Shown: positions 379-46,857 of the stretch, in pieces
How positions within the stretch are numbered: the first letter of the stretch is position 1
Layout of the letters: each line of letters begins with the position of its first letter
IMG/VR virus record: IMGVR_UViG_3300034072_000758
Location: 434,001-498,000 of that record
Length of the DNA stretch: 64,000 nt
Reading direction: 5' to 3' (one strand)
Made by a program: the position numbers and the translations under genes
Notes under the pieces: generated by a model
Databases searched by the model: none
Told to the model about the DNA's origin: nothing
Seen by the model: the letters and a program-made list of their open reading frames with translations, nothing else

Positions 379-648
379 ATGTACCACTTCATCGCCCTAC
401 TTCTCACGTTTCTTCACGTGATCATCGCCATCATTGTTGGTGGTATCGGTTCAGTTTTGTTCATGTTCAGGACAAAAAATTTCCGCGATCTGACCGCAAT
501 GATTCTGGTCATCGGTGGCATCTATATGCTGATCGGGGCTATTTTCTTCCCGGTGTTTGCTATCGGTTCGTTCGCCCTGTTCTGGCCAGTTTACATCGTC
601 ACCCTGTATCTTCTTCACATCAAGAAAGAAGACAATACGCTCACATAA
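379..648 (+). CDS. small membrane protein (about 3 TM helices)
   Basis: Very hydrophobic 89-aa ORF with AAGGAAGG upstream; stop codon lies inside the downstream tRNA-Thr. Confidence 0.7.
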   Translation: MYHFIALLLTFLHVIIAIIVGGIGSVLFMFRTKNFRDLTAMILVIGGIYMLIGAIFFPVFAIGSFALFWPVYIVTLYLLHIKKEDNTLT

Positions 649-714
649 GTTCAATTGGTAGACTATCTCCTTGGTACGGAGGCAGTAGGAGTTCGAGTCT
701 CCTTGTGAGCACCA
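639..714 (+). tRNA. trnT: tRNA-Thr(GGT)
   Basis: GCTCACA/TGTGAGC acceptor, TCTCC-TTGGTAC-GGAGG anticodon arm, GTTCGAGTC T-loop, encoded CCA. Confidence 0.9.
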
Positions 715-741
715 TAATCGTTATTCACAAGGATCACTCAA

Positions 742-909
742 ATGATGATATTCACTTGGCTATTGTCAGCGGCTTCGCTAAACAATCAGGCACATCTTAG
801 AAATTTGCCGAAGACCAAGATCGACCCAGCACCGAATGAGCATCCGGTTACGGAAACACCTCCAAAAAAGAAAAAGAGAGCTTGGTTCTCTTTGTTGGAC
901 ACCGACTGA
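742..909 (+). CDS. small hypothetical protein (55 aa, not in ORF track)
   Basis: AAGGA upstream of ATG 742; MMIFTWLLSAAS...KKKKRAWFSLLDTD fills the gap up to the convergent cysS. Confidence 0.5.
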   Translation: MMIFTWLLSAASLNNQAHLRNLPKTKIDPAPNEHPVTETPPKKKKRAWFSLLDTD

Positions 910-910
910 T

Positions 911-2245
911 TCACACGAACCAGTCGGTTCCTTCTTTTGTATCCAATAGGGTGACGCCGCGTTCGGCCAAAGCATTCCGAATGATGTCCGCCATGACCCA
1001 ATCTTTACCGGCTCTTGCCAGATTGCGGTCGTAGATCAGACCTTCGATGATTTCACGCTCGTCCTTAGACACATTCTTGAACCAATCCTCGTATCGATGA
1101 TTGAGGACACCAAGCAATTGCGCAGCCGCAACGAACTCGGACTTGGTTTCCGGCTTCATCAAACTGGATAATTCAGCCAGAGCCAAAGGCGTATTCAGAT
1201 CATCATGAAGATGATCGAGGAATGATTGTGGCACCGGAACTTCGTGCGTGGTGAGCTTTGCCGTCTGGCGCAGGAAGGCATAGTAGCCATCCAGCCGGTT
1301 CTTCGTGGTTTGAAGAAGTTCTGGGGTCCAATTCAAGACGGTTCTATAATGCGCTGAGAGCAACGCCAAGCGCACGATTTCCCCATCCCATTCCTTTACG
1401 AGATCGTGGACCAACACGACATTCCCTACCGACTTGGACATCTTGCCGTTATTGGTCAGGAACTCGTTATGCATCCAGTAGCGGGAATACTCGTGATTAT
1501 GGCCGCAATGACCTTGAGCACATAACCCCTGAGAGATTTCATTCTCATGGTGCGGAAAGGCCAAGTCTATACCCCCGCCATGAATGTCGATAGGAAGACC
1601 CAGATTGGCTTCAATCATGGCCGAGCACTCAATGTGCCAACCGGGGCGTCCAGCACCCCACGGACTTTCCCAAGCCGGTTCACCGGGCTTCGACGGTTTC
1701 CATAGTACGAAGTCTTTTTGGTCGCGCTTATACGACACCTCACCGATCCGGCTTTCGGCTTCGTCATCCGAACCATTGGAGAAAACACCATGATCCGGGT
1801 ATGAATCCACGTCAAACAAAACGTGACCTTCCGACACATACGCATGGCCGTTCTTGATCAGACGCACAATCATGTCGATCATGGCCGGGATATGGTTGGT
1901 CGCCAGAGGTTCAATGGGAGGCCGTAGGACGCCCACGGAGGCCATGTCTTGACGATATATGTCCGTGTAGCGTTCAGCAATAACCTTGTAGTCCACGCCC
2001 TCCTGAGAGGCTTTCTGGATGATTTTATCATCGATGTCGGTGATGTTCCGAGCATAGATGACATGGTTATTTCCATACTTGTGGCGGAGAACACGAAACA
2101 GCAAATCGAATACGACCGCTGGGCGGGCATTGCCGATATGTGCGTGATTATATACCGTAGGACCACAGACGTACATCGTAATCCGGTTAGGATTTCGAGG
2201 AACGAAAGTTTCTTTGGATCGAGTTTTGCTGTTGAATATCTTCAT
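911..2245 (-). CDS. cysS: cysteinyl-tRNA synthetase
   Basis: MYVCGPTVY, HIGN, RNITDIDDKII, GRPGWHIECSAM, DIHGGG.DL.FPHHENE, KMSKS; start set at MKIFNS by family N-terminus. Confidence 0.97.
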   Translation of the reverse strand: MKIFNSKTRSKETFVPRNPNRITMYVCGPTVYNHAHIGNARPAVVFDLLFRVLRHKYGNNHVIYARNITDIDDKIIQKASQEGVDYKVIAERYTDIYRQDMASVGVLRPPIEPLATNHIPAMIDMIVRLIKNGHAYVSEGHVLFDVDSYPDHGVFSNGSDDEAESRIGEVSYKRDQKDFVLWKPSKPGEPAWESPWGAGRPGWHIECSAMIEANLGLPIDIHGGGIDLAFPHHENEISQGLCAQGHCGHNHEYSRYWMHNEFLTNNGKMSKSVGNVVLVHDLVKEWDGEIVRLALLSAHYRTVLNWTPELLQTTKNRLDGYYAFLRQTAKLTTHEVPVPQSFLDHLHDDLNTPLALAELSSLMKPETKSEFVAAAQLLGVLNHRYEDWFKNVSKDEREIIEGLIYDRNLARAGKDWVMADIIRNALAERGVTLLDTKEGTDWFV

Positions 2246-2290
2246 AGATAAATTCCTAACATAACCAATGACTGTTGGCAACACTATGGC

Positions 2291-2318
2291 TTGACAATAT
2301 TAATTACCATGCTAGACT
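2291..2318 (+). promoter_or_regulatory. sigma70-type early promoter
   Basis: TTGACA-16 nt-TAGACT (GCTAGACT) upstream of the early ORF cluster; similar promoters at 7294, 12370, 21789, 26238, 33083, 41873. Confidence 0.7.
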
Positions 2319-2348
2319 AGAATTAGAAAATATTGGAGATTAGTTTAC

Positions 2349-2600
2349 ATGATGACCCTCGACATGGCTGAAATGGAATACGATTTGAGTAAGAAAGCCC
2401 TGACTTTCTACATGGATCGTGGCGAAGCTTGGCCAAGCGAAGTCGAAGTGGTATCGCATCATACGGGTCGTGTCATCCGTTTTGTTTACGATTTGGAACT
2501 GGCTCAACAAAATGATTTCTGGGACGGCGAACTGACCGCCTTAAAACCAACCGAAGAATGTAATGTGAAAACCCTCTGGCTGGTGCCGTGTTTCCGATGA
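2349..2600 (+). CDS. hypothetical protein
   Basis: GGAG RBS after promoter; first gene of a tightly packed operon. Confidence 0.7.
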   Translation: MMTLDMAEMEYDLSKKALTFYMDRGEAWPSEVEVVSHHTGRVIRFVYDLELAQQNDFWDGELTALKPTEECNVKTLWLVPCFR

Positions 2601-2920
2601 CTGATGCCGAATATGAAAAATTAGCTCGCCGGGTCGCACACCTTATGGGGGACGACGATGCGGCTGCAAAGAGCCTGTGGCGGATGGCTGCGGGCTGTCG
2701 AGAACGCGCTGTAGAAGTCGTCCGCGCCTTCGGACAACATCTTAGTGCCGGTCTGGCCAAAACTTTAATTGAGACCGATAATGATTTCTGCGATTATGTT
2801 TGCGCATATGTCATCAACGGTGGTCTTGAAGTCGAATGGTTGTATTGGAGCCGCGATGAATATGACGCCGATCATGATCTCAAAAGAATAGCCGCGATAG
2901 CCAAGAAAGCACTGATATGA
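2588..2920 (+). CDS. hypothetical protein
   Basis: Overlapping operon ORF; start may be ATG 2597. Confidence 0.65.
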   Translation: MFPMTDAEYEKLARRVAHLMGDDDAAAKSLWRMAAGCRERAVEVVRAFGQHLSAGLAKTLIETDNDFCDYVCAYVINGGLEVEWLYWSRDEYDADHDLKRIAAIAKKALI

Positions 2921-3213
2921 ATCAGCCATTGTACAAAGTAGTAATGCGGGCAGAAGAAATCAAAGATGGCTCAACCGTCACCAAAAAGACGGGTGAAGTT
3001 CAGTATACGTTCAAGAACAAATTGTCGCTGTACCAAACTCAAACCAAAGGGGAACCACCCATTCTTCCGGTCATTATCGAAGGATACTTCCTCGTTGGTG
3101 CTAGAGGACAAATCAATCAGATCAAAGGCGATCTGGAACTGATGATGACCATGACCGCCGAAGAGTTGTTGTGGTTTGCTCAAGAACTTTGTGATGAAGA
3201 GGAAGACAAATGA
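2917..3213 (+). CDS. hypothetical protein
   Basis: ATGA-coupled operon ORF. Confidence 0.65.
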   Translation: MNQPLYKVVMRAEEIKDGSTVTKKTGEVQYTFKNKLSLYQTQTKGEPPILPVIIEGYFLVGARGQINQIKGDLELMMTMTAEELLWFAQELCDEEEDK

Positions 3214-3392
3214 AATTTTGTGTGACGGCTGAAAACGATCAAGGTCTAACCTTTCAGGTTACATTCCATAATCCCAATTGGAATGGCGCAACGGCTGCTG
3301 CGCAGCGCGCCGTAAATAAGGCGGTGAAGGCCGATCCTTTCCATAAAAAGCATGGACCGTTCTTGGCCAAGAATATCGACGTGACAGCATGA
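3210..3392 (+). CDS. hypothetical protein
   Basis: ATGA-coupled operon ORF. Confidence 0.6.
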   Translation: MKFCVTAENDQGLTFQVTFHNPNWNGATAAAQRAVNKAVKADPFHKKHGPFLAKNIDVTA

Positions 3393-4159
3393 AGCGAATC
3401 AACCCCATAACCAATAGTGCGCAGGATAAGAGAGATTTTAAGATCAGAACGTTCTCTGATCTTAATCACTATCTCGACACGTTTTTGGGCGGGGAGATTG
3501 CGCGTTGTGCGAAGGCTACGGTCTTCTTCATGATTAATCGCATGTTGGATCAACCTGCCACCAAACCATTTAAACCCTTCACAATGGGTGATATTTTACG
3601 AGTGACCGGGGAAGACATCGATGTCGTGGTCCCTTCGACAAGCTGGCTTCAAAATCTCGACATTCTTGTGTTTGATCGGTCGATTGGTGACAATGATCCA
3701 ATCACCCTGAAATATAGCACTCTTTTTAAAGACTTATATCGAAATAACGATCTGGGCGCTGGGCCGAAACCAGTACCAACCCCACCTATTATCCCCCGGT
3801 TGTTGGCGGCAATTGATGGCACGGTTGACCACGAGCACAATGTCAGAGAAAAAGAAGATCGGGTATTTACTAAGACAATCCATCGTTTTCTTAATACCAA
3901 CAGACTTTTTCTTCAATACTCTCTGACCAAATGTGCCGGTAAAGAAGATAGTCATATATCCAATGATCGCAAACCAATGGTTGTTATTGAATTTATTCAT
4001 AGCTATGTTGGAATTATAGGACACACTTGGTTTACGGGCGCGGGCAAAGTATTAGCTCCCGAAACCAATGTTTATTACAAGGTTCGTCCCAAAAAAGGGT
4101 CTTCGCTCGAAGAGGCCGAAGAAGAACTTATGTTGCTGATGATGGAGGAAAGAATATGA
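3389..4159 (+). CDS. hypothetical protein with acidic-then-hydrophobic C-terminal motif
   Basis: 256 aa, ATGA-coupled; ends EEAEEELMLLMMEERI. Confidence 0.7.
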   Translation: MKRINPITNSAQDKRDFKIRTFSDLNHYLDTFLGGEIARCAKATVFFMINRMLDQPATKPFKPFTMGDILRVTGEDIDVVVPSTSWLQNLDILVFDRSIGDNDPITLKYSTLFKDLYRNNDLGAGPKPVPTPPIIPRLLAAIDGTVDHEHNVREKEDRVFTKTIHRFLNTNRLFLQYSLTKCAGKEDSHISNDRKPMVVIEFIHSYVGIIGHTWFTGAGKVLAPETNVYYKVRPKKGSSLEEAEEELMLLMMEERI

Positions 4160-4285
4160 AAATAGCTATGATTGTCGCGGCTATAGCTTTGTGCTATACC
4201 GGCAACAACACGACCAAAGAAACCACCGATCTTGAGAACGCGCAATGGGTTCAGGGTCTTATGAATATTTTGACTGCTGTGAAAT

Positions 4286-4984
4286 ATGAAACTCCGTCCG
4301 TTACGCGATGTGATTCTTGAAGGCTTAGGTGAGGCTTGGAAATATTATCCAAAGAACCTCGCCTTAAAGAAATGCTTTCAGATCATCGGTGAAATTGAAA
4401 GCTCCAAAAAGACGGGGTTCGATGACCTGTGCCAAGCCATACAATCTTTACCGGATGGCAGCATTAAAATTTCTCGTTGTCTCGACTATTACAAGACCGT
4501 AACTTTCGATCTTAACGCAGTAGAAAGCGGCGAGATCGATTTATATAGAGCTATGGTGGAAGATGACACTTGGCACTCTGTTTTTGATTTACACATGATT
4601 AAAAATCACGCCAGTATCATCCCAGCCCCATCGGTATCCAGAAAGCTGATTAATTTTGGGTATTGTCTTCATTGTTGTTTGAAGGCTACCACAACAAAAT
4701 ACGCAAGTATGTTATGTCGAGTTATAGAAGCGCTTTCGAACGAAAATTGGAAGATGTTTACTTACCATTGCCAACATGGCTATAACAACGGCATCCCGGC
4801 ATCAAGATCAATATTAAGCTGGCTGCGCTACGAGTATCAAGTAGGCCAGTATGGTCCCGATTACGATCTCTTAGCCGATGTTATAGCGATAATGGACCGG
4901 AACACTTCGTTGGCTATAGATAAATGGTTCGACCAATGCCTCATTGAGACGCGGGAGAGCGACCATAATGCAAGTGATAAATGA
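4286..4984 (+). CDS. hypothetical protein
   Basis: 232-aa ORF ending the + operon. Confidence 0.65.
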   Translation: MKLRPLRDVILEGLGEAWKYYPKNLALKKCFQIIGEIESSKKTGFDDLCQAIQSLPDGSIKISRCLDYYKTVTFDLNAVESGEIDLYRAMVEDDTWHSVFDLHMIKNHASIIPAPSVSRKLINFGYCLHCCLKATTTKYASMLCRVIEALSNENWKMFTYHCQHGYNNGIPASRSILSWLRYEYQVGQYGPDYDLLADVIAIMDRNTSLAIDKWFDQCLIETRESDHNASDK

Positions 4985-5390
4985 TCTCGTACTGCGGCGG
5001 CTCTATAAATTCTGGCTTAATAAAGACGGTGACGGCTTCATCAAAACTGGTTGATATGCTTTTCCGATTGACTGTTCGGAAAAGCATATAAGGATGAATC
5101 TTATTACCTTGGTCGATTTCGCGTTTCAACTCTGAGCGGATTTTGAGAATTGCGGTCGAATCATATAGATAATCCTGTCGTAACAAGATGCCATTTTCCA
5201 CGTCAAACCTGAACATTCTCGACATGGCTTGAACCGGGTCTTTGTGTCCAGCAAACATATTTACCGGGGCAGTCATAGGCTCATCAAACAAATCTTCTAG
5301 CTGATCAATAGGCATAATCTTGGCGCTGGAATATTGTAGCCTGAGATTTGCCATATTGATGTTTAATTTGTACGCGACGTATGAGGTCAT
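4941..5390 (-). CDS. hypothetical protein
   Basis: Start moved to MTSYV (5390), which gives an ATGA overlap with the upstream gene's stop. Confidence 0.6.
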   Translation of the reverse strand: MTSYVAYKLNINMANLRLQYSSAKIMPIDQLEDLFDEPMTAPVNMFAGHKDPVQAMSRMFRFDVENGILLRQDYLYDSTAILKIRSELKREIDQGNKIHPYMLFRTVNRKSISTSFDEAVTVFIKPEFIEPPQYEIIYHLHYGRSPASQ

Positions 5391-5608
5391 TGATAAGCAC
5401 CACTGGTAATGGACGCCAGAAGACGCATAACGGCCTCTGGATGCGTCTTCATTGCGTCGATGGGGCGAAGATACCCAAGGGCGCGTTTCTCGGTGTACGC
5501 CCATTCTTTAGCCCAAGAATCGATGTCGAAGTTCTTATGTTCGTCATCTTTGTCCGCATTTTCCCAGACCGCACGAGCTTGAGCTATGATTTGTTCAAGG
5601 TCAGTCAC
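5387..5608 (-). CDS. Xre/MbcA/ParS-type antitoxin C-terminal domain protein (DUF2384-like)
   Basis: W...EKRALGYLRPIDAMKT...VMRLLASITSGAYQ matches the family pattern W..P..ALG..RP.D...T......V..LL..I..G.Y. Confidence 0.7.
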   Translation of the reverse strand: MTDLEQIIAQARAVWENADKDDEHKNFDIDSWAKEWAYTEKRALGYLRPIDAMKTHPEAVMRLLASITSGAYQ

Positions 5609-5789
5609 GGAGCACCAATGGGGCTTCCGACGCTTGTTCTATGCGATACGCCTTCTCATGCCAGAACTCGAACATTTTAAGATCGTTCTTGGTCAAGGCG
5701 TGACGGAGTTCATCTATGTACCCTTGCCTCAACTCAGGAGGAAGGCTCATAAAATCGGCGACGGTTAATCTGAATGATAATGTGCTCAT
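5601..5789 (-). CDS. hypothetical protein
   Basis: 62 aa, overlaps the next gene of the minus operon. Confidence 0.55.
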   Translation of the reverse strand: MSTLSFRLTVADFMSLPPELRQGYIDELRHALTKNDLKMFEFWHEKAYRIEQASEAPLVLRD

Positions 5790-5869
5790 ATCACGAGCAT
5801 ATCAAAGATAGTTAATAAATGGCAATTTTAAAATTGATTTATCGAGACCATATTTGATATATTTACTAC

Positions 5870-6157
5870 ATGACAACAGATACAGATTTCCGAAAGATCA
5901 TCGCCGAAGCGTTCAAGAATGCTGACGCCAAACCAGAATATGAACGCGCCGAATACCTGATCAGGGAATTGACCGGCGTGATTGCTTTGAAGCCGGATTT
6001 GGAAAGCTTCAACGACTGTGTTATGGGGAATTTCAACATTCGCCTTGTGATGAATAGAGCCGAATGGTATACCCCCGCGTTACGAGTGTCTGAATACATG
6101 GCCGCGCTCTTTACCGAGACGGCTAGGATTAAAGACGAGTGGGAAAAGTCGGAATAA
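5870..6157 (+). CDS. hypothetical protein
   Basis: 95-aa ORF after an AT-rich promoter region. Confidence 0.65.
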   Translation: MTTDTDFRKIIAEAFKNADAKPEYERAEYLIRELTGVIALKPDLESFNDCVMGNFNIRLVMNRAEWYTPALRVSEYMAALFTETARIKDEWEKSE

Positions 6158-6249
6158 CTTTTCCACAGGTTTCAGTCCTTATTGTTATATTATGGTTGAC
6201 TTTGATACTAAATAGAATTATAGTCACCAAATAGACCGTAAGGTCATGT

Positions 6250-6325
6250 TCCTCGGTAGCTCAGTTGGTAGAGCGCCTGACTGTTAATCAGGATGTCACA
6301 GGTTCGAGTCCTGTCCGAGGAGCCA
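6250..6325 (+). tRNA. trnN: tRNA-Asn(GTT)
   Basis: TCCTCGG/CCGAGGA acceptor, CCTGA-CTGTTAA-TCAGG, GGTTCGAGTCC, encoded CCA. Confidence 0.95.
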
Positions 6326-6381
6326 TTAAAATTCGTGCGTTGTTTACCGCGTTGTAGCGGAGTAATAAATACGCACTATAT

Positions 6382-6453
6382 GGCCGATTAGCTCAGTGGT
6401 AGAGCGTCTCGTTTACACCGAGAATGTCGGGAGTTCGACCCTCTCATCGGCTA
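6382..6453 (+). tRNA. trnV: tRNA-Val(TAC), CCA not encoded
   Basis: GGCCGAT/ATCGGCT acceptor, TCTCG-TTTACAC-CGAGA; followed by CCATCC-TTCG-GATGG-TTTTCTT hairpin. Confidence 0.93.
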
Positions 6454-6538
6454 CCCATCCTTCGGATGGTTTTCTTTATATAAAAATAATTTTGCGGTTG
6501 CGAAATTATAAATAATGTATTAAGATGTCCTTAGATAT

Positions 6539-6610
6539 GCGGGTGTAACTCAGCGGTAGAGTGTCAGCCTTCCAAGCTGTTCGTCGCAGGTTCGATCCCT
6601 GTCACCCGCT
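6539..6610 (+). tRNA. trnG: tRNA-Gly(TCC), CCA not encoded
   Basis: GCGGGTG/CACCCGC acceptor, U73, TCAGC-CTTCCAA-GCTGT. Confidence 0.93.
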
Positions 6611-6629
6611 CTCTACAAAGGACATCAAG

Positions 6630-8520: not shown

Positions 8521-9348
8521 ATGGCCTTCTTGAATTTAGATTTACGTCCAGTATCCAAGAAAATCGACTCCTTCGTCAGTTACGTTGATAAGCGTGTTGA
8601 CGAAATGGATTTATATACTCAGACCATGTTGTTCTGTGAACTGAGTTGCTTGGCGTACTTCTCTCATAACGAGGTTCAGGATTGGGCCAAAAAATTAAAT
8701 TTCCTGTCAGTAGTCGCTATCGAGAATGATGGTGGGTTGGCATATCTGTTCGAAACGGAAACCGATCTGATCTTGTCGTTCCGTGGGAGTGATAATGCTC
8801 AGAATCGTAAAACCAACTTCGACCTCGATCTAGTGAAGGATGGAGCTTTAGCCGGTAAAGTTCACCACGGTTTCTTGAAGCTGGCAGACAAGATGATCAA
8901 CAGCTTTGTAACGCTGCTGGATGCTAATAATTGTGAAAAGAAGGTTTGGGTAACAGGACATTCTCTGGGAGGCGCAATAGCTGCGATCATGGCCGTGAAA
9001 GCCGAGCGTCGAGTCGGACCTAATGTTGATGGTATCGTGACTTTCGGCCAACCTAAGATAGGCAATCATGCCTATATCAAGGGAATTACTACCCCGTATT
9101 ATCGTTGGGTAAACCACGAAGACATCGTATCGAAGCTTCCGATGTGGTTACCTCATTTTGGTTCATTAAAATATCTTAACAACAAAGGTGATCTGAGCAT
9201 TCAGACTTTTATTTCCACTTTGTTTATATTCCCTTCTACCCAATCGATAGAAGATCATGACATCGTGAAATATCGCGCTGTTCTGGAAAAACAAAAGGGG
9301 AAGGAACTTAATCCCTCCCCTATGACATTCTTCAAACTTATTAAGTAA
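8521..9348 (+). CDS. class 3 lipase / phospholipase (alpha/beta hydrolase)
   Basis: LSFRGS, GKVHHGF, VWVTGHSLGG, TFGQPKIGN, VNHEDIVSKLP, C-terminal DH; TAAATA 5 nt before ATG. Confidence 0.9.
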   Translation: MAFLNLDLRPVSKKIDSFVSYVDKRVDEMDLYTQTMLFCELSCLAYFSHNEVQDWAKKLNFLSVVAIENDGGLAYLFETETDLILSFRGSDNAQNRKTNFDLDLVKDGALAGKVHHGFLKLADKMINSFVTLLDANNCEKKVWVTGHSLGGAIAAIMAVKAERRVGPNVDGIVTFGQPKIGNHAYIKGITTPYYRWVNHEDIVSKLPMWLPHFGSLKYLNNKGDLSIQTFISTLFIFPSTQSIEDHDIVKYRAVLEKQKGKELNPSPMTFFKLIK

Positions 9349-42373: not shown

Positions 42374-42704
42374 ATATGTATAGCAACACGTCCATTAAAA
42401 GATTATCTATACATTCCACCGAGGGCTTGTCCGTGTGCGGGAAATTAGTGTACATCAAACGATTATCATTGAACGTAAATTCATACTTATATTCTTGAAT
42501 ACCATTATTTCTAAGCTTATACGTGATGTCATCAATAAAAATCTCCCAAATAAAAACCGAATCAATTTTGTCTATTTCAATACGTTTATACTTATGTCCA
42601 TAGCCCTCACGACATTGCGTCCATTTACCCAAGCTCTCTATTTGCTTAAAAGCATTTTCAAGAGACCTGAGTAAATGTCGTTGTTCCTGCGGTGTGTAAA
42701 TCAT
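42372..42704 (-). CDS. hypothetical protein, shared C-terminal motif
   Basis: Start MIYTPQ gives an ATGA overlap with the K+ channel stop; ends ECIDNLLMDVLLYI. Confidence 0.6.
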   Translation of the reverse strand: MIYTPQEQRHLLRSLENAFKQIESLGKWTQCREGYGHKYKRIEIDKIDSVFIWEIFIDDITYKLRNNGIQEYKYEFTFNDNRLMYTNFPHTDKPSVECIDNLLMDVLLYI

Positions 42705-43045
42705 TTCTTTTGAGACCGAATGTATTTCAGAATTTCTTCTTGTTCTTCGTGCGTGAACTCGTTGCGATTCTCGACCATCGTACTGATGATGCGACCGATC
42801 AACAAAGGCATAATGAAAAGAAGAATGACGTGCATCAAGCCAGTCGCAATAAGCCGCCCAGCCAAAGTTGTGGGATACATGTCGCCGTAGCCGACCGTAG
42901 AGGCAGTCACGACGCACCACCAAAGACTATCCCAGAAAGTCTTTCCTTCGGCCCACGAGTAGCCCAGAGCCGCCAGAAACACGATCAATACATACAGAGC
43001 AATAAGCTCACGGATCGTGTTTGTCGCCTTGATCAAATACTTCAT
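42701..43045 (-). CDS. two-TM potassium channel (KcsA-like, 114 aa)
   Basis: TM1, pore helix SLWWCVVTAST, filter TVGYGD, TM2; AAGGAG RBS. Confidence 0.9.
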   Translation of the reverse strand: MKYLIKATNTIRELIALYVLIVFLAALGYSWAEGKTFWDSLWWCVVTASTVGYGDMYPTTLAGRLIATGLMHVILLFIMPLLIGRIISTMVENRNEFTHEEQEEILKYIRSQKK

Positions 43046-43104
43046 ACTATCTCCTTTTCTAATAGAGAAGCGCAGCATACTACTTTTTAATGGAAGCATC
43101 AAGA

Positions 43105-43386
43105 TCAGCCATGACGATATAATGCGTCAGACAACCAACCATCCCAATCATCGAATGGAGGAATGTTGTTGAGATCGACCACGAAGTAACGCATCAGGGC
43201 ATTATCGACTGTGGCTTGCGCTCTGGCCTTCCAAACAGCTTTCGCTTCCTCGGAAGATGGATAGATACCTACCAAGTCGATTTTAGAAACATCTTTGAAT
43301 TGGAGAGAATCGACGGAGACCAACTCTCCCCCAATCACCAAATACAACCACTGTCTTGTGTGAAAGCTGTCGGTTTCGTTGGTCAT
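43105..43386 (-). CDS. DUF4170-family protein (alphaproteobacterial)
   Basis: LVIGGEL......F.D...IDLVG.YP....A...WKA.AQATVDNA.MRYF. Confidence 0.8.
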   Translation of the reverse strand: MTNETDSFHTRQWLYLVIGGELVSVDSLQFKDVSKIDLVGIYPSSEEAKAVWKARAQATVDNALMRYFVVDLNNIPPFDDWDGWLSDALYRHG

Positions 43387-43413
43387 ATTCCAGTCCTTGT
43401 GATCAAAGTATTT

Positions 43414-43490
43414 TGGCAGGGGTGGAGAGATTCGAACTCCCATCGCGCAGTTTTGGAGACTGCCGCTCTAACCGTTGGAGCTACACCCCT
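43414..43490 (-). tRNA. trnW: tRNA-Trp(CCA)
   Basis: AGGGGTG/CACCCCT, GCAGT-CTCCAAA-ACTGC, G73-CCA. Confidence 0.95.
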
Positions 43491-43502
43491 ATAGGCGATC
43501 AA

Positions 43503-43781
43503 TCACTTGACCGCAAAGGAAGAAATGAGCTTACAACTCGTTTTTACAAACCCTACATAACGAGGGTCCGAGAAACGGTCGAAGTCATTCAAATAATCGA
43601 AGTCCGCCTTGTCGATTTCATACACATGATATTCGACGGCTGGTGAATGCTGTTCTACAACCGTAAAACTACGGTCGCTTCTCAAGCCACGTTCTTTATC
43701 TGCGATCTTCACAGCTTCAATCGGCCTTAAGTTATTCGTCAAGGCGACGATATGATTTTGATTCAAAACAGCGGTACGCAT
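43503..43781 (-). CDS. hypothetical protein inside the tRNA array
   Basis: AAGGAG RBS, 92 aa. Confidence 0.6.
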   Translation of the reverse strand: MRTAVLNQNHIVALTNNLRPIEAVKIADKERGLRSDRSFTVVEQHSPAVEYHVYEIDKADFDYLNDFDRFSDPRYVGFVKTSCKLISSFAVK

Positions 43782-43841
43782 ACTATTACTCCTTACCCGA
43801 CATTAATAATTTATTTACATTATCAAAGTCAATTTTATTTT

Positions 43842-43932
43842 TGGAGGACGTGGTGGGACTCGAACCCACGGTGGTCTATGTTACGACAACAGGTTAAGAG
43901 CCTGTCCCTCTCGCCGCTGAGGTGACACGTCC
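43842..43932 (-). tRNA. tRNA-Lys(CTT) with long variable arm (91 nt)
   Basis: GGACGTG/CACGTCC, ACAGG-CTCTTAA-CCTGT, ~19-nt variable region with a GTC/GAC stem, U73-CCA. Confidence 0.85.
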
Positions 43933-44026
43933 GTATCAAAAATGTAGGGAGATCGGGTTCACCACAATCATGCTGGTACACAAGGTCGTCACATGATTAG
44001 TAACCCACTAGGGCATGGCTCCAGCT

Positions 44027-44102
44027 TGGTGAACACGGTGGGGGTCGAACCCACGACCTACTGATTAAAAGTCAGTTGCTCTACCTACTGAGCTACGTGT
44101 TC
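44027..44102 (-). tRNA. trnK: tRNA-Lys(TTT), canonical
   Basis: GAACACG/CGTGTTC, ACTGA-CTTTTAA-TCAGT, A73-CCA. Confidence 0.95.
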
Positions 44103-44103
44103 G

Positions 44104-44183
44104 TGCGCCCTGTCGGACTCGAACCGACACTCGTTAGAAGCAGATTTTAAGTCTGCCGGGTCTACCAATTTCCCCAAGGGCGC
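44104..44183 (-). tRNA. trnL: tRNA-Leu(TAA)
   Basis: GCGCCCT/AGGGCGC, GCAGA-CTTAAAA-TCTGC, type II arm, A73, no CCA. Confidence 0.92.
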
Positions 44184-44233
44184 TTAGGTACTTTTCTTGT
44201 AAACATCAAAGATGATTTTGGCAACATCTTTGT

Positions 44234-44309
44234 TGGCGAGGATAGAAGGATTCGAACCTCCGACACATGCGTTCGAAGCGCATTGCTCTGTCCACTGAGC
44301 TATATCCCC
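44234..44309 (-). tRNA. trnR: tRNA-Arg(TCG)
   Basis: GGGGATA/TATCCTC, ATGCG-CTTCGAA-CGCAT, G73-CCA. Confidence 0.93.
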
Positions 44310-44310
44310 G

Positions 44311-44395
44311 TGCGCCGAGAGGGATTCGAACCCTCATACCATTACGGTGTCCGTTTTTGAAACGGGTGCGTCTACCAAAGTTCCGCCACCAGCGC
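44311..44395 (-). tRNA. trnL: tRNA-Leu(CAA)
   Basis: GCGCTGG/TCGGCGC, CCCGT-TTCAAAA-ACGGA, type II arm, A73. Confidence 0.9.
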
Positions 44396-44446
44396 ATAGA
44401 AAACCTTTAATATAGATCGTTATCCACATCCATATTAAAGGTTATG

Positions 44447-44530
44447 AGGATGTAGAGGGACTCGAACCCCCGATGGTCTTTTGACAACGGATTAAAAGCC
44501 CGTCCCTCTCGCCGCTGAGGTGATACATCC
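44447..44530 (-). tRNA. tRNA-Lys(TTT) with long variable arm
   Basis: GGATGTA/TACATCC, ACGGG-CTTTTAA-TCCGT, GTC-AAAA-GAC variable hairpin, D-arm identical to the 43842 tRNA, U73, no CCA. Confidence 0.85.
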
Positions 44531-44545
44531 ATAGTAGTATTTGTT

Positions 44546-44622
44546 TGGAGGACGTGGTGGGACTCGAACCCACAACATTCGGTTTAAGAGACCGACGCTC
44601 TAACCATTGTAGCTACACGTCC
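44546..44622 (-). tRNA. trnK: tRNA-Lys(CTT), short variable loop
   Basis: Same acceptor and T-arm as 43842..43932; TCGGT-CTCTTAA-ACCGA; U73-CCA. Confidence 0.93.
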
Positions 44623-44639
44623 GTATCAAACAAATACTG

Positions 44640-44712
44640 CGCGGATCAAGGGACTCGAACCCATAACCCTCTGTTTAGAAGACAGATGCTCGTCCAATTG
44701 AGCTTCATCCGC
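44640..44712 (-). tRNA. trnR: tRNA-Arg(TCT)
   Basis: GCGGATG/GATCCGC (7:66 mismatch), TCTGT-CTTCTAA-ACAGA. Confidence 0.88.
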
Positions 44713-44721
44713 ATAGTAGTG

Positions 44722-44807
44722 TGTGCCGAGGGGGACTCGAACCCCCACGCCCATTACAGGCCCCGGTTTCTGAAACCGGGAAGTCTACCAAATTTCATCA
44801 TCAGCAC
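44722..44807 (-). tRNA. trnL: tRNA-Leu(CAG)
   Basis: GTGCTGA/TCGGCAC, CCGGT-TTCAGAA-ACCGG, type II arm. Confidence 0.9.
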
Positions 44808-44832
44808 GTATGCTCTTTCGAGCAAAGTCTTG

Positions 44833-44912
44833 TACGGGTGAGAGGACTCGAACCTCCACGATTGCTCGCTAGAACCTAAACCTAGTGCGTCTACCAGTTT
44901 CGCCACACCCGC
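44833..44912 (-). tRNA. trnL: tRNA-Leu(TAG)
   Basis: GCGGGTG/CACCCGT, CTAGG-TTTAGGT-TCTAG, type II arm. Confidence 0.92.
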
Positions 44913-44913
44913 G

Positions 44914-44986
44914 CACTGCCAGTAGGACTCGAACCTACAACCTTCTGATTCGTAATCAGATGCTCATCCAGTTGAGCTATGGCAGC
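44914..44986 (-). tRNA. trnR: tRNA-Arg(ACG)
   Basis: GCTGCCA/TGGCAGT, TCTGA-TTACGAA-TCAGA. Confidence 0.92.
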
Positions 44987-44992
44987 ATAAAG

Positions 44993-45102
44993 CAACAAGA
45001 CGGTGGGGTTCGAACCCACAACCTTTCGGCTCCGACTTTGACCGCAACGGCTTTTCGCAAACCATTACGTGCGTGTGTATACCCATTCCACCACGCCAAG
45101 TT
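44993..45102 (-). ncRNA. oversized tRNA-like RNA (110 nt) without a canonical anticodon loop
   Basis: T-arm GTGGG-TTCGAAC-CCCAC, type II D-arm GTG-GAATGGGTATA-CAC, imperfect acceptor AACTTGGCG/CGTCTTGTT, ~55 nt multi-hairpin centre. Confidence 0.65.
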
Positions 45103-45110
45103 ACTTCAAG

Positions 45111-45195
45111 TGTCCATGAAAGGATTCGAACCTTCACGCCCATTACAGGCAACAGCCTCTCAAGCTGCCGTGGCTACCAATTACACCACACGGAC
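45111..45195 (-). tRNA. trnL: tRNA-Leu(GAG)
   Basis: GTCCGTG/CATGGAC, GCAGC-TTGAGAG-GCTGT, type II arm. Confidence 0.92.
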
Positions 45196-45204
45196 ATACG
45201 CAAG

Positions 45205-45321
45205 TGCGTTCGGGAGGATTCGAACCTCCAACCTCTATACTCGTTTGATCGTCATCCGACCAGTATAGCGGTATCCAACCCTCTAATGGGCTGGCGTGGC
45301 TACCAATTTCACCACGAGCGC
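45205..45321 (-). ncRNA. oversized Leu-like tRNA (117 nt) with 7-bp anticodon stem and ~45-nt variable arm
   Basis: GCGCTCG/CGAACGC acceptor, Leu-type D-arm, CCAGCCC-ATTAGA-GGGTTGG, CTATACT/AGTATAG arm, GGAGG-TTCGAAT-CCTCC, A73. Confidence 0.7.
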
Positions 45322-45331
45322 ATATTACGAG

Positions 45332-45406
45332 CGGGACTGGCAGGATTCGAACCTGCGACCTTCGGTTTCGTAGACCGGCGCTCTTATTCCGCTGAGCTAC
45401 AGTCCC
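45332..45406 (-). tRNA. trnR: tRNA-Arg(ACG), second copy
   Basis: GGGACTG/CAGTCCC, CCGGT-CTACGAA-ACCGA. Confidence 0.92.
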
Positions 45407-45436
45407 GTAATACTTTGATTCACAATGTAAAAGAAC

Positions 45437-45474
45437 ATAGAAAAACCCCCAAAAGCGTATTGCTCTTGGGGGTT
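45437..45474 (-). terminator. attenuator terminator (3:4 helix) directly upstream of the tRNA array
   Basis: AACCCCCAAGAGC-AATAC-GCTTTTGGGGGTT followed by TTTCT on the minus strand. Confidence 0.85.
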
Positions 45475-45532
45475 CGATCTTAACCGTTATGTTGTCTGCC
45501 TATTTCATCCGATGAAACGCAGACATGCGCGA

Positions 45533-45598
45533 TTAAACCGTACCCCCTTTCGGGCGGCGGAGCCACTTTCTTAACAGTTTAAGGCGCAGAGCGAACAT
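45533..45598 (-). CDS. leader (attenuator) peptide MFALRLKLLRKWLRRPKGGTV
   Basis: AGGA 10 nt upstream of ATG; codons 4-17 are 13/14 Leu/Arg/Lys/Trp; stop lies within the antiterminator strand. Confidence 0.8.
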   Translation of the reverse strand: MFALRLKLLRKWLRRPKGGTV

Positions 45599-45644
45599 AA
45601 CGAAAAATTCCTGTGATTTTGGGGCGAAACCCCGTGTGGATTTC

Positions 45645-45674
45645 ACCCTATCATTTCTATTTATCATCGGTCAA
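45645..45674 (-). promoter_or_regulatory. tRNA-array promoter (sigma70-like, with an embedded TAAATA late element)
   Basis: TTGACC-18 nt-TAGGGT preceded by TG; ATAAATA within the spacer. Confidence 0.55.
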
Positions 45675-45713
45675 CAAAAAAAGTTATTTTCCGATGAATT
45701 TTTTTGAACAAAG

Positions 45714-45744
45714 AAAAAGCGCCGCACGTTTCCATGCGGCGCTT
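45714..45744 (-). terminator. intrinsic terminator
   Basis: AAGCGCCGCA..TGCGGCGCTTTTT after the HNH-like gene; insulates the leader. Confidence 0.8.
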
Positions 45745-45749
45745 CATCA

Positions 45750-46325
45750 TTACTTTACGATCTTGAAACCGTGCTTCTTGTAGTATGGAACGTTCTCGAA
45801 ATCGATGACCGACACCATAAACTTACCATAGCCGTTGCTGACCATGACTTGTTCGACCGTGGCCACGACCTGATCCACGACCGACTTGACCGCCTTCGCC
45901 GCTTTGATCTTCGGCTTGATGGTTTCGACAGCGGGTTCAACCGACGCTTCATCTTCAATAACGCGCGGCGCGATTTCGGCTGCGACCGTTTCGATGCGAG
46001 TGTCGATGACATTGATGGAATCGCCGAACTTGGAGACTTCACGATCCAGACGCTTGAGTTCGAGGTTTTCGACCGCGTTGTTATGACCGTTACCATCCTT
46101 ATGAACGACTTCATCATTCTTCGTCGCGCCGAGGAAGCAGATGGCTATCAGACGATGGAGGCCGACCTTGGAATGGAGGGCGACGTTCTTGAGACTGATA
46201 CGGAGCTTATCGCCATCCTTCTGATAGGATAGTTCGGTGCCGTCCTTCTTGAAGACGCGACCATCGGAAGTGGCAAGATATTGTTCGTCCGCGAAATAGA
46301 AACGGACGCGCTTGACGCTCGACAT
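45750..46325 (-). CDS. HNH-fold protein with Lys/Ala-rich C-terminal extension
   Basis: ATSDGRVF, LHRLIAICF, VVHKDGNGHNNAVENLE; codon-adapted rather than AT-rich. Confidence 0.7.
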   Translation of the reverse strand: MSSVKRVRFYFADEQYLATSDGRVFKKDGTELSYQKDGDKLRISLKNVALHSKVGLHRLIAICFLGATKNDEVVHKDGNGHNNAVENLELKRLDREVSKFGDSINVIDTRIETVAAEIAPRVIEDEASVEPAVETIKPKIKAAKAVKSVVDQVVATVEQVMVSNGYGKFMVSVIDFENVPYYKKHGFKIVK

Positions 46326-46404
46326 ATAAATCTCCTTAATTGATGTTGTTGGGGAGACAATATATCAGGTGTTTCAATTCGTCAACACCCCACGGCCAAA
46401 AATA

Positions 46405-46857
46405 TTATGACGGCATAGTCCCGTCCATATTTCCATCCGGCCAACCACTATAGATGTCTATAGCATCCAAGTCTTCTAAGGTTTCACAAGCGTCAATTTG
46501 TGCTTTTAACGCCCACGAATATGTATAGACCTGATTAACATATAACAGTAAATATCCAGAAAATGTGATCAAACCTTGAGCATTCATAGGAACGTTATTA
46601 TTATTATTATCGCGCCATGTATAGTTCGGTGGCAAAGGAATACCAGCCGTGACAGCAGCAACCATACCGGTAAGGTTTGTTCTCGCGCGGGCATCGGTAG
46701 CCCAAAAATATCCAAGATACCACATACCCGCAGCAAGCCTAGTCTCTCGGTGAGTATTAATATCATTGTTCAGTTTTAAGATTGTAGCCCCAACTGTTCG
46801 GTTATCCTCAACCGAGATCAGAACGCCATTATCGTATACTTCTAATTTATTCAACAT
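46405..46857 (-). CDS. DUF4376-like tail fibre assembly protein
   Basis: W.TD..AR.NL.G, YTWRD.NN..VPM, LKAQIDA..T.E.LDAI. Confidence 0.7.
   Translation of the reverse strand: MLNKLEVYDNGVLISVEDNRTVGATILKLNNDINTHRETRLAAGMWYLGYFWATDARARTNLTGMVAAVTAGIPLPPNYTWRDNNNNNVPMNAQGLITFSGYLLLYVNQVYTYSWALKAQIDACETLEDLDAIDIYSGWPDGNMDGTMPS

Follow-up and report, generated by a model that had tools for sequence, protein, structure and literature searches.

A candidate leader-peptide attenuator upstream of the tRNA genes of a giant phage

Introduction

The transcription of amino-acid operons is classically controlled by leader-peptide attenuators (trpL, hisL, leuL, thrL, ilvL/ivbL, pheL), in which a short translated leader rich in regulatory codons precedes an intrinsic terminator, and in which a mutually exclusive antiterminator has its upstream strand located where a ribosome that finishes the leader covers it. 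These devices respond to the level of aminoacyl-tRNA whatever its cause, and some of them (thr, ilv) are multivalent. A component of the translation machinery can be regulated in the same way, as in the pheST attenuator (pheM leader), whereas T-box riboswitches sense the state of a specific tRNA by binding uncharged tRNA directly, without translation. Large tRNA sets are known from phages such as T4, T5, mycobacteriophages and huge phages, where they are usually explained by codon usage or, more recently, as replacements for host tRNAs cut by defence nucleases, while the control of their expression is essentially unknown. Here, we examine a small ORF located upstream of a tRNA array in a giant phage. 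A sequence-only reading of this locus had proposed a ribosome-coupled attenuator with a leader peptide matched to the tRNAs of the array. We compare it with leaders found in front of other tRNA arrays, to evaluate whether such phages may make extra tRNAs only when ribosomes stall for lack of them.

Genomic Context and Anatomy of the Locus

The window, i.e., the whole stretch of 64,000 nucleotides analysed here, corresponds to positions 434001-498000 of a 516,805-bp uncultured jumbo-phage contig (IMGVR_UViG_3300034072_000758, also Ga0310127_000012). The phage is T4-like in its core genes, including UvsX, gp32, gp13 and tail fibres, and its closest cultured relatives are Agrobacterium phage Atu_ph07 and Sinorhizobium phage Phosso, with UvsX about 55% identical. 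Since its PTH2 protein and its tRNAs hit mainly phages of Alphaproteobacteria, the host is probably an alphaproteobacterium, even though this assignment is an inference. The features of the locus are as follows (window coordinates, all on the minus strand):

45716..45745 (-), intrinsic terminator (13-bp stem plus T tract) of the upstream HNH endonuclease gene (45750..46325), which insulates the leader unit from upstream transcription.
45645..45674 (-), promoter-like region, holding TTGACC (45674-45669), the box GATAAATAGAAAT (45665-45653) shared by all leaders of this clade, and TAGGGT (45650-45645).
45622..45648 (-), 5' UTR hairpin GGGUGAAAUCC-ACACG-GGGUUUCGCCC; a similar hairpin is found in leader R5 (see below).
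45609..45612 (-), Shine-Dalgarno-like AGGA, 10 nt before the ATG.
45533..45598 (-), leader ORF of 21 codons plus TAA, translated as MFALRLKLLRKWLRRPKGGTV.
45554..45589 (-), control codons 4-15 (L R L K L L R K W L R R).
45574..45587 (-), segment 1, the 5' strand of the predicted anti-antiterminator, pairing with 45541..45527.
45531..45547 (-), segment 2 (GGGGGUACGGUUUAAUC), in the last codons of the ORF and the stop codon, forming the upstream strand of the antiterminator.
45494..45524 (-), central hairpin enclosed by the 2:3 helix, a possible pause element.
45468..45485 (-), segment 3 (GGUUAAGAUCGAACCCCC), shared between the antiterminator and the 5' arm of the terminator.
45441..45475 (-), intrinsic terminator (3:4) with U tract, -22.4 kcal/mol.
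43414..45406 (-), tRNA array, in order: Arg-ACG, a 117-nt tRNA-like element, Leu-GAG, Arg-ACG, Leu-TAG, Leu-CAG, Arg-TCT, Lys-CTT, Lys-TTT (long arm), Leu-CAA, Arg-TCG, Leu-TAA, Lys-TTT, Lys-CTT (long arm), a 92-aa ORF, Trp-CCA.

The observation at the origin of this study is confirmed. As initially read, codons 4-17 of the ORF are 5 Leu, 4 Arg, 3 Lys, 1 Trp and 1 Pro, and ARAGORN finds Arg x4, Leu x5, Lys x4 and Trp x1 downstream. That the array encodes only these tRNAs is nearly rather than exactly right, because Rfam also scores the 117-nt tRNA-like element (45321..45205), which has a Leu-like body and a 33-nt insertion in the anticodon arm. Of the 20 codons after the ATG, 13 are readable by array anticodons, 12 of them consecutive (codons 4-15) and together probing 8 of the 10 distinct anticodons, but Pro16 is not readable. 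In composition, 12 of 15 control residues are in {L,R,K,W}, against 18.7% in the long ORFs of this phage (binomial P = 5e-7). An in-frame extension of 44 aa (ATG at 45667) was rejected because its ATG lies inside the promoter-like box. Finally, the terminator stem (45475..45443) was recovered by a terminator scan, and only 32 nt separate its U tract from the first tRNA; no promoter-like site was found in this interval, so the array must be reached by read-through.

Leaders Upstream of Other tRNA Arrays

Altogether, eight leaders were found in the six phage genomes in which they were examined. All share one layout, consisting of a promoter-like box, a GGA-type motif 10-14 nt upstream of the ATG (in seven of eight), an ATG-initiated ORF of 21-46 codons with control codons, a segment in the distal ORF complementary to the 5' arm of the terminator, a central hairpin at or just after the stop codon, a terminator (hairpins of -15 to -22 kcal/mol with U tracts, 24-57 nt after the stop) and then tRNA genes. 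The box of the window leader (hereafter W1), with TTGAC(A/C/G)-N16-18, also lies upstream of W2 and R1-R5 (see below), while TAAATAGAA lies before tRNA-Asn at window 6209.

Five L/R/K/W leaders precede Arg/Leu/Lys/Trp arrays. Besides W1, a second jumbo phage (IMGVR_UViG_3300050120_000230; L003/L004; neighbouring tail-fibre protein 48% identical) carries the homologous array (Arg3, Leu5, one long-arm ‘Ile-TAT’, Lys4, Trp) in inverted orientation, and yet keeps directly upstream a small ORF, MNRRLATLRLKTLRLKWLAGSGS... (R1), with a terminator and the same promoter-like box. Three more genomes, reached through homologues of the DUF4376 tail-fibre protein, each have such a leader before Arg/Leu/Lys/Trp tRNAs: R2, MIASVVTSKLLRLRRRKWLTSGVLRAE (genome L023); R3, MIASVVNTKLLRLRRLKWLMGGVLRAV (L036); and R4, MTRRLATLRLKTLRLKWLDGSGS... 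(L037). In L023, however, the Lys and Trp tRNAs are separated from the leader by opposite-strand genes, and the leader uses AAA although only Lys-CTT was seen.

Two further leaders provide a reciprocal control. About 55 kb away in the window's own genome, a second array (Phe, Ile x2, Phe, Met x2, Gln, Asn, Pro, Asp x2) is preceded by MFAAVATMINIANQVDTDFDMAIAMPATQQPFSVGSIHLTGDDTGI* (W2), the first 32 residues of which contain no L, R, K or W, and of which the terminator is paralogous to that of W1. In L037, the equivalent leader R5, MFVVANAIPATITTMPVGVAMAAGFVAARPMNQNQVFQ..., precedes Ile, Val, Gln x2, Met, Pro x3, Asn x2, Ala x2, Thr, Met, Val. This explains the Ala/Val/Thr codons of W2, which have no cognate tRNA in the immediately downstream array: in the window's genome those tRNAs lie further downstream, past inserted opposite-strand genes. 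Codon-level matching is specific to the own array, W1 matching its own array at 13/20 codons against 2/20 for the array of W2, and W2 (MFAAVATMINIANQVDTDFDMAIAMPATQQPF...) matching its own array at 22/45 against 1/45 for the array of W1. Against the amino-acid usage of the window phage, the control regions give binomial P values of 5e-7 (W1), 1e-6 (R1), 1e-6 (R4), 2e-4 (R2), 2e-4 (R3), 6e-9 (W2) and 1e-6 (R5).

Moreover, an unrelated, AT-rich 634,780-bp uncultured phage (LR745206.1; L039) has an array of Asn, Arg, Leu, Val, Ile, Thr and Met tRNAs preceded by a terminator and by a T/M/N/L/V/I/R leader, MTTMNLNMTMNLTLNVVNITLCNIRPTEGSDLFREIVM* (U1), which has no obvious Shine-Dalgarno sequence. 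In this leader (MTTMNLNMTMNLTLNVVNITLCNIR...), 23 of 24 control residues belong to the set of the array (P = 1e-9) and 22 of 24 control codons are readable by the array.

Selection appears to act on decoding rather than on sequence. Within the control codons, R2 and R3 differ by three synonymous changes (CTG>TTG, TTG>CTG and AAA>AAG) and by CGT>CTT (Arg to Leu, within the set), whereas W1, R1 and R2 share KWL with different codons. Every Arg codon in the control regions is cognate to an Arg tRNA of its own array: AGA appears only in W1 and U1, which encode Arg-TCT, CGG only in R1 and R4, which encode Arg-CCG, and R2 uses only CGC/CGU and has Arg-GCG alone. The leaders also spread their codons over synonymous families.

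Other searches did not enlarge this set. blastn of the leader and array against 50,697 phage records gave only generic tRNA hits, and patterns for the leader, the first tRNA-Arg and a 21-mer of the tRNA-like element found only the window's own contig and L004, while a tRNA-Trp pattern (with a gap range one base too tight for L004) found the window's contig and an unrelated prophage (L007). A terminator-motif scan found W1 and W2 but no third paralogue in the 517-kb contig, its 10 other hits carrying no tRNAs; the Asn-Val-Gly tRNA genes of the same phage (window 6250-6611) have no leader. Searching IMG/VR with PTH2 as an anchor found only the phage itself, a Logan copy of the same phage is 100% identical and thus uninformative, and two scans of genome contigs found nothing. 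Relatives L008, L017, L018 and L022 have no usable array within 10 kb; the regions retrieved from Atu_ph07 and Phosso contain no tRNAs (which the Atu_ph07 record does not annotate), and the tRNA region of CcrColossus shows no obvious leader. Lastly, a crude scan for skewed small ORFs before terminators recovered W1 and R1 but nothing else convincing.

Predicted RNA Architecture

The 231-nt region of W1 folds far better than shuffled sequences (z = -6.4). The 2:3 helix of the sequence-only reading (45547-45531 with 45485-45468) is the pairing predicted by RNAfold when the RNA ends after the 5' arm of the terminator, and its duplex beats dinucleotide shuffles of the ORF (-23.5 against a mean of -15.5, p=0.017), while the 9-bp helix proposed to occlude the AUG is present in the full-length MFE structure. 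In contrast, the 1:2 hairpin drawn in that reading is weak (-9.0), and RNAfold prefers a different, stronger 1:2 between the control codons CUGCGCCUUAAACUGU and ACGGUUUAAUCGCGC, at the end of the ORF (-22.4). A strong 1:2 is also predicted in R1.

All eight leaders fold independently into the same nested alternative, in which a long 2:3 stem (-24 to -42 kcal/mol) joins the distal ORF to the 5' arm of the terminator and encloses a hairpin that contains, directly follows or, in W1, lies 8 nt after the stop codon. In U1, the distal ORF segment CUGAGGGUU repeats the 3' arm of the terminator, and the resulting 2:3 duplex is -21.4 against -7.7 for shuffles. Complementarity exceeds shuffled ORFs in W1, R1, W2, R5 and U1, but is marginal in R4 (p=0.054) and not better than shuffles in R2 and R3 taken on their own (p=0.36 and 0.19); Fisher's combined P over six leaders is 3e-7. 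R1 and R4 differ by a compensatory U-A to C-G pair and by a G-C to G-U pair at the base of the 2:3 helix. In the stop-codon hairpin, R2 and R3 differ by G-C to A-U (which also converts UGA to UAA) and by A-U to U-A, but these two changes were read by hand from the folds, because MAFFT misaligns that stretch and the MAFFT-based count, which is unreliable in the central part of the antiterminator owing to indels, scored both pairs as broken.

To mimic translation, we folded the RNA with a ribosome masking successive codons. On the nascent W1 RNA (cut after segment 3), the 5' arm of the terminator stays about 50% paired, through 2:3, with the A site at codons 2-14, then drops to 7-10% from codon 15 to the stop, which is the behaviour that the attenuation model requires. 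R1 (MNRRLATLRLKTLRLKWL...) behaves as a textbook switch even at equilibrium, P(terminator) being 0.97 with no ribosome, 0.01-0.5 with the ribosome on codons 4-13, and 0.92-0.98 from codon 14 on. With the full-length RNA at equilibrium, however, the W1 and W2 terminators always win (as would also be the case for trp), hence the switch must be kinetic. Furthermore, in W2 and R1, and by the same layout in R4, R2/R3 and U1, the stop codon lies 15-30 nt beyond segment 2, so that a ribosome parked at the stop no longer covers it; termination then needs the ribosome to be on segment 2 as segment 3 emerges, or steric blocking of the long-range helix.

Proposed Mechanism and Alternative Explanations

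In the absence of expression, 3'-end or ribosome-occupancy data, these comparisons support, with good confidence, the interpretation of the locus as a ribosome-mediated transcription attenuator placed in front of a phage tRNA array. In the proposed sequence of events, which is inferred, transcription starts at the conserved promoter-like box and a ribosome initiates on the 21-codon leader, where it reads 12 consecutive Leu/Arg/Lys/Trp codons. If any of those aminoacyl-tRNAs is scarce, the ribosome stalls on codons 4-14, which melts the 1:2 helix and leaves segment 2 free to pair with segment 3 as the latter emerges, so that the terminator cannot form and RNA polymerase reads into the tRNA genes. 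If decoding is fast, the ribosome reaches codons 15 to stop and covers segment 2, the 3:4 terminator forms and transcription ends near 45441. As the products of the array relieve the stall, the circuit would be a negative-feedback, demand-driven supply of tRNAs, acting as an OR gate over about ten isoacceptors. The physiological trigger would be a loss or shortage of host tRNAs during infection. The trigger first suggested, anticodon-nuclease defences, remains possible but is weakened as a specific explanation, because leaders also exist for Phe/Ile/Met/Gln/Asn/Pro/Asp/Ala/Val/Thr arrays, which points to a general sensor of decoding capacity.

At face value, the same device might instead read amino-acid starvation (uncharged tRNA), as in the trp/his/leu operons, the phage adjusting tRNA output or infection timing to the nutritional state of its host. 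Our in silico evidence cannot separate the two signals, yet we consider this alternative unlikely, since making more tRNA does not relieve amino-acid starvation, which would make the feedback pointless, and since the codon-by-isoacceptor matching (Arg AGA/CGG tracking TCT/CCG) is expected for sensing individual tRNA species and is not needed for sensing an amino acid.

Two other readings appear very unlikely. The small ORFs might encode functional micro-proteins, with a terminator simply ending the small gene and arrays transcribed independently: LRLKLLRKWL could form an amphipathic cationic helix, and gene callers annotate W2 and R5 as 46-aa genes. Nevertheless, three unrelated compositions each mirror the adjacent array, the sequences keep set membership rather than residue identity (R-to-L swap, indels), a search of 5.8 billion proteins found no homologues of W2, the distal ORF is constrained as RNA, and in W1 there is no room or signal for a promoter between the terminator and the first tRNA. 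Alternatively, the region might be an untranslated structured leader or a small RNA ending at its own terminator (a processing platform or regulator), the ORF being incidental. The strong folding of the region, the sequestration of the AUG in the MFE fold and the Shine-Dalgarno spacing, which is longer than optimal, are compatible with this view, but a GGA-type motif is kept at a conserved distance from the ATG in seven of the eight leaders, the frame stays open in all eight, and neither the synonymous substitution pattern nor the codon-anticodon tracking is expected for a non-coding RNA; no matching Rfam family was found either (see below).

More broadly, we regard it as somewhat more likely than not that huge phages from unrelated lineages carry a general class of tRNA-supply sensors, i.e., multivalent leader peptides in which each codon probes one phage-encoded isoacceptor and in which a stall on any of them switches on the whole array through antitermination. 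Phage tRNA arrays would then be an inducible, self-limiting response to tRNA depletion, whether caused by host shut-off, codon mismatch or tRNA-cleaving defences, rather than constitutive cargo. Such a device would show that phages measure decoding capacity codon by codon, and would yield a simple sequence rule (leader composition equals array content) predicting which tRNAs a phage considers limiting. It would also make the question of why phages carry tRNAs directly testable with small reporter constructs, and would offer compact, programmable sensors of individual tRNA species.

Comparison with Known Systems

The mechanism class, trp-type attenuation, is known, whereas its use on tRNA genes would be the first case found in this search: literature searches, necessarily incomplete, and the Atu_ph07 paper (PMC6102473) turned up no description of leader-peptide or attenuator control of tRNA genes, in phages or otherwise. 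Reports on phage tRNA arrays, including those of jumbo phages related to this one, treat the arrays as cargo. In the Rfam search of 42500-46500, only tRNA and chance-level hits were found at E<=10, without any leader, T-box or sRNA family. With the leader-peptide attenuators of amino-acid operons, the present locus has in common a short ORF rich in regulatory codons, an intrinsic terminator, a predicted mutually exclusive antiterminator whose upstream strand lies where a ribosome finishing the leader would cover it and, as in thr/ilv, a multivalent design. It differs from them in that the downstream genes are tRNA genes and not genes for amino-acid biosynthesis, transport or synthetases (a variation in the regulated function rather than a mechanistic mismatch), that the leaders probe 4-10 amino acids and nearly every isoacceptor once instead of using runs of one codon, that they reside in phages, and that the stop codon usually sits in or next to a central hairpin inside the antiterminator. 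The pheST attenuator likewise applies leader-peptide attenuation to a component of the translation machinery that handles the sensed amino acid, but it controls a synthetase, uses a single amino acid and is chromosomal. Finally, T-box riboswitches also switch between a terminator and an antiterminator according to the state of a specific tRNA, but they do so by direct binding and without translation, and the locus has no specifier or T-box sequence.

tRNA Content, Atypical tRNAs and a tRNA-Like Element

Together with the 14 tRNA genes of the Arg/Leu/Lys/Trp array, those found on two further stretches of the same phage contig (L010 and L014; contig 424-441 kb) and at window 639-6611 bring the total to at least 36 in the 88 kb examined, over which no Ser, Tyr, His, Cys or Glu tRNA was seen. 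A scan for the terminator motif found no third paralogue. Two kinds of atypical tRNA or tRNA-like elements were encountered in these phages, in the window as well as in L004 (a stretch of a second jumbo phage), L037 (the genome carrying leaders R4 and R5) and L023 (the genome carrying leader R2):

Window 43842-43932 and 44446-44530 (-); L004 6629-6719 and 7615-7699; L037 9618-9704, 10286-10379, 10780-10865 and 1489-1574: long-variable-arm copies of tRNAs.
Window 45205-45321 (-); L023 19101-19224: tRNA-like element.

The long-variable-arm copies (85-94 nt, class-II-like) belong to tRNAs that are normally class I, i.e., Lys-CTT and Lys-TTT in the window, and also Trp and Asn in L037, and each of them sits beside a canonical copy. 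Notably, the 91-nt Lys-CTT shares its acceptor stem and T arm with the canonical Lys-CTT at 44546-44622. This feature is conserved across the clade, and possible roles include escape variants or decoys for tRNA-targeting nucleases, or altered charging. The tRNA-like element, which is 117 nt long in the window, is recognized by Rfam (tRNA, 34.8 bits) but missed by ARAGORN. It has a Leu-like acceptor and D arm and a 33-nt insertion where the anticodon arm should be, while a 124-nt counterpart lies between Lys and Trp in L023. It could be an intron-containing tRNA, a pseudo-tRNA or something else.

Protein-Coding Genes

Several protein-coding genes were noted, either in the window's genome or in the related genomes (L017, a relative; L036, the genome carrying leader R3):

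Window ~911-2245 (-) (L010 10860-12194); L014 6180-6707; L017 12987-13970: translation-related enzymes.
Window 45750-46325 (-): HNH homing-endonuclease gene.
Window 42701-43386 (-); L023 18360-18749; L036 1-187: small ion-channel-like gene (PF00520/PF07885) and DUF4170 gene.

The translation-related enzymes encoded by the phage near its tRNA region are a class-I aminoacyl-tRNA synthetase (PF01406, CysRS-type) and a PTH2 peptidyl-tRNA hydrolase, while a relative encodes a PF00579 (Trp/Tyr-type) synthetase. PTH2 lies a few kb from the leader in four genomes. The HNH homing-endonuclease gene sits between the DUF4376 tail-fibre gene and the leader, and no ORF downstream of the DUF4376 gene in L003 (another stretch of the second jumbo phage) matched it; it looks like a mobile insertion next to the tRNA module. 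Finally, the ion-channel-like gene and the DUF4170 gene flank or interrupt the Arg/Leu/Lys/Trp tRNA cluster in several of these phages.

The same phage is present at 100% nucleotide identity over more than 20 kb in an independent public sequencing run (Logan SRR10854512; L011, L013 and L015), which is a possible route to the source environment and host.

Sequence Elements Flanking the Leaders

Two further sets of elements were observed downstream and upstream of the leaders:

L004 8690-8810; L023 17035-17190; L036 14930-15085; L037 7930-8070: stretch between the leader terminator and the first tRNA.
Window 6196-6222 and 45653-45674; L014 9896-9927; L004 ~9050-9082; L023 16800-16832; L036 14700-14735; L037 7674-7705 and 3018-3046: shared promoter-like element.

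In R1-R4 (the Leu/Arg/Lys/Trp leaders of the related genomes), about 150-190 nt lie between the leader terminator and the first tRNA, and this stretch holds conserved extra hairpins (GCCGGTCGCCACCGGT, and GCCCCCGG...CCGGGGGC without a U tract), to which R2 and R3 add a second terminator-like hairpin. These hairpins could be involved in processing or in a second control step. In contrast, W1 (the leader of the window's Arg/Leu/Lys/Trp array) lacks this stretch.

The promoter-like element, TTGAC(A/C/G)-N16-18-(G/C)ATAAATA(C/G/A)AAT, lies upstream of all leaders of this clade and is also present, albeit with different spacing, upstream of the leaderless Asn-Val-Gly tRNA cluster. It resembles the T4 late box TATAAATA, which also occurs directly before structural genes at window 48976 and 28907 (-).
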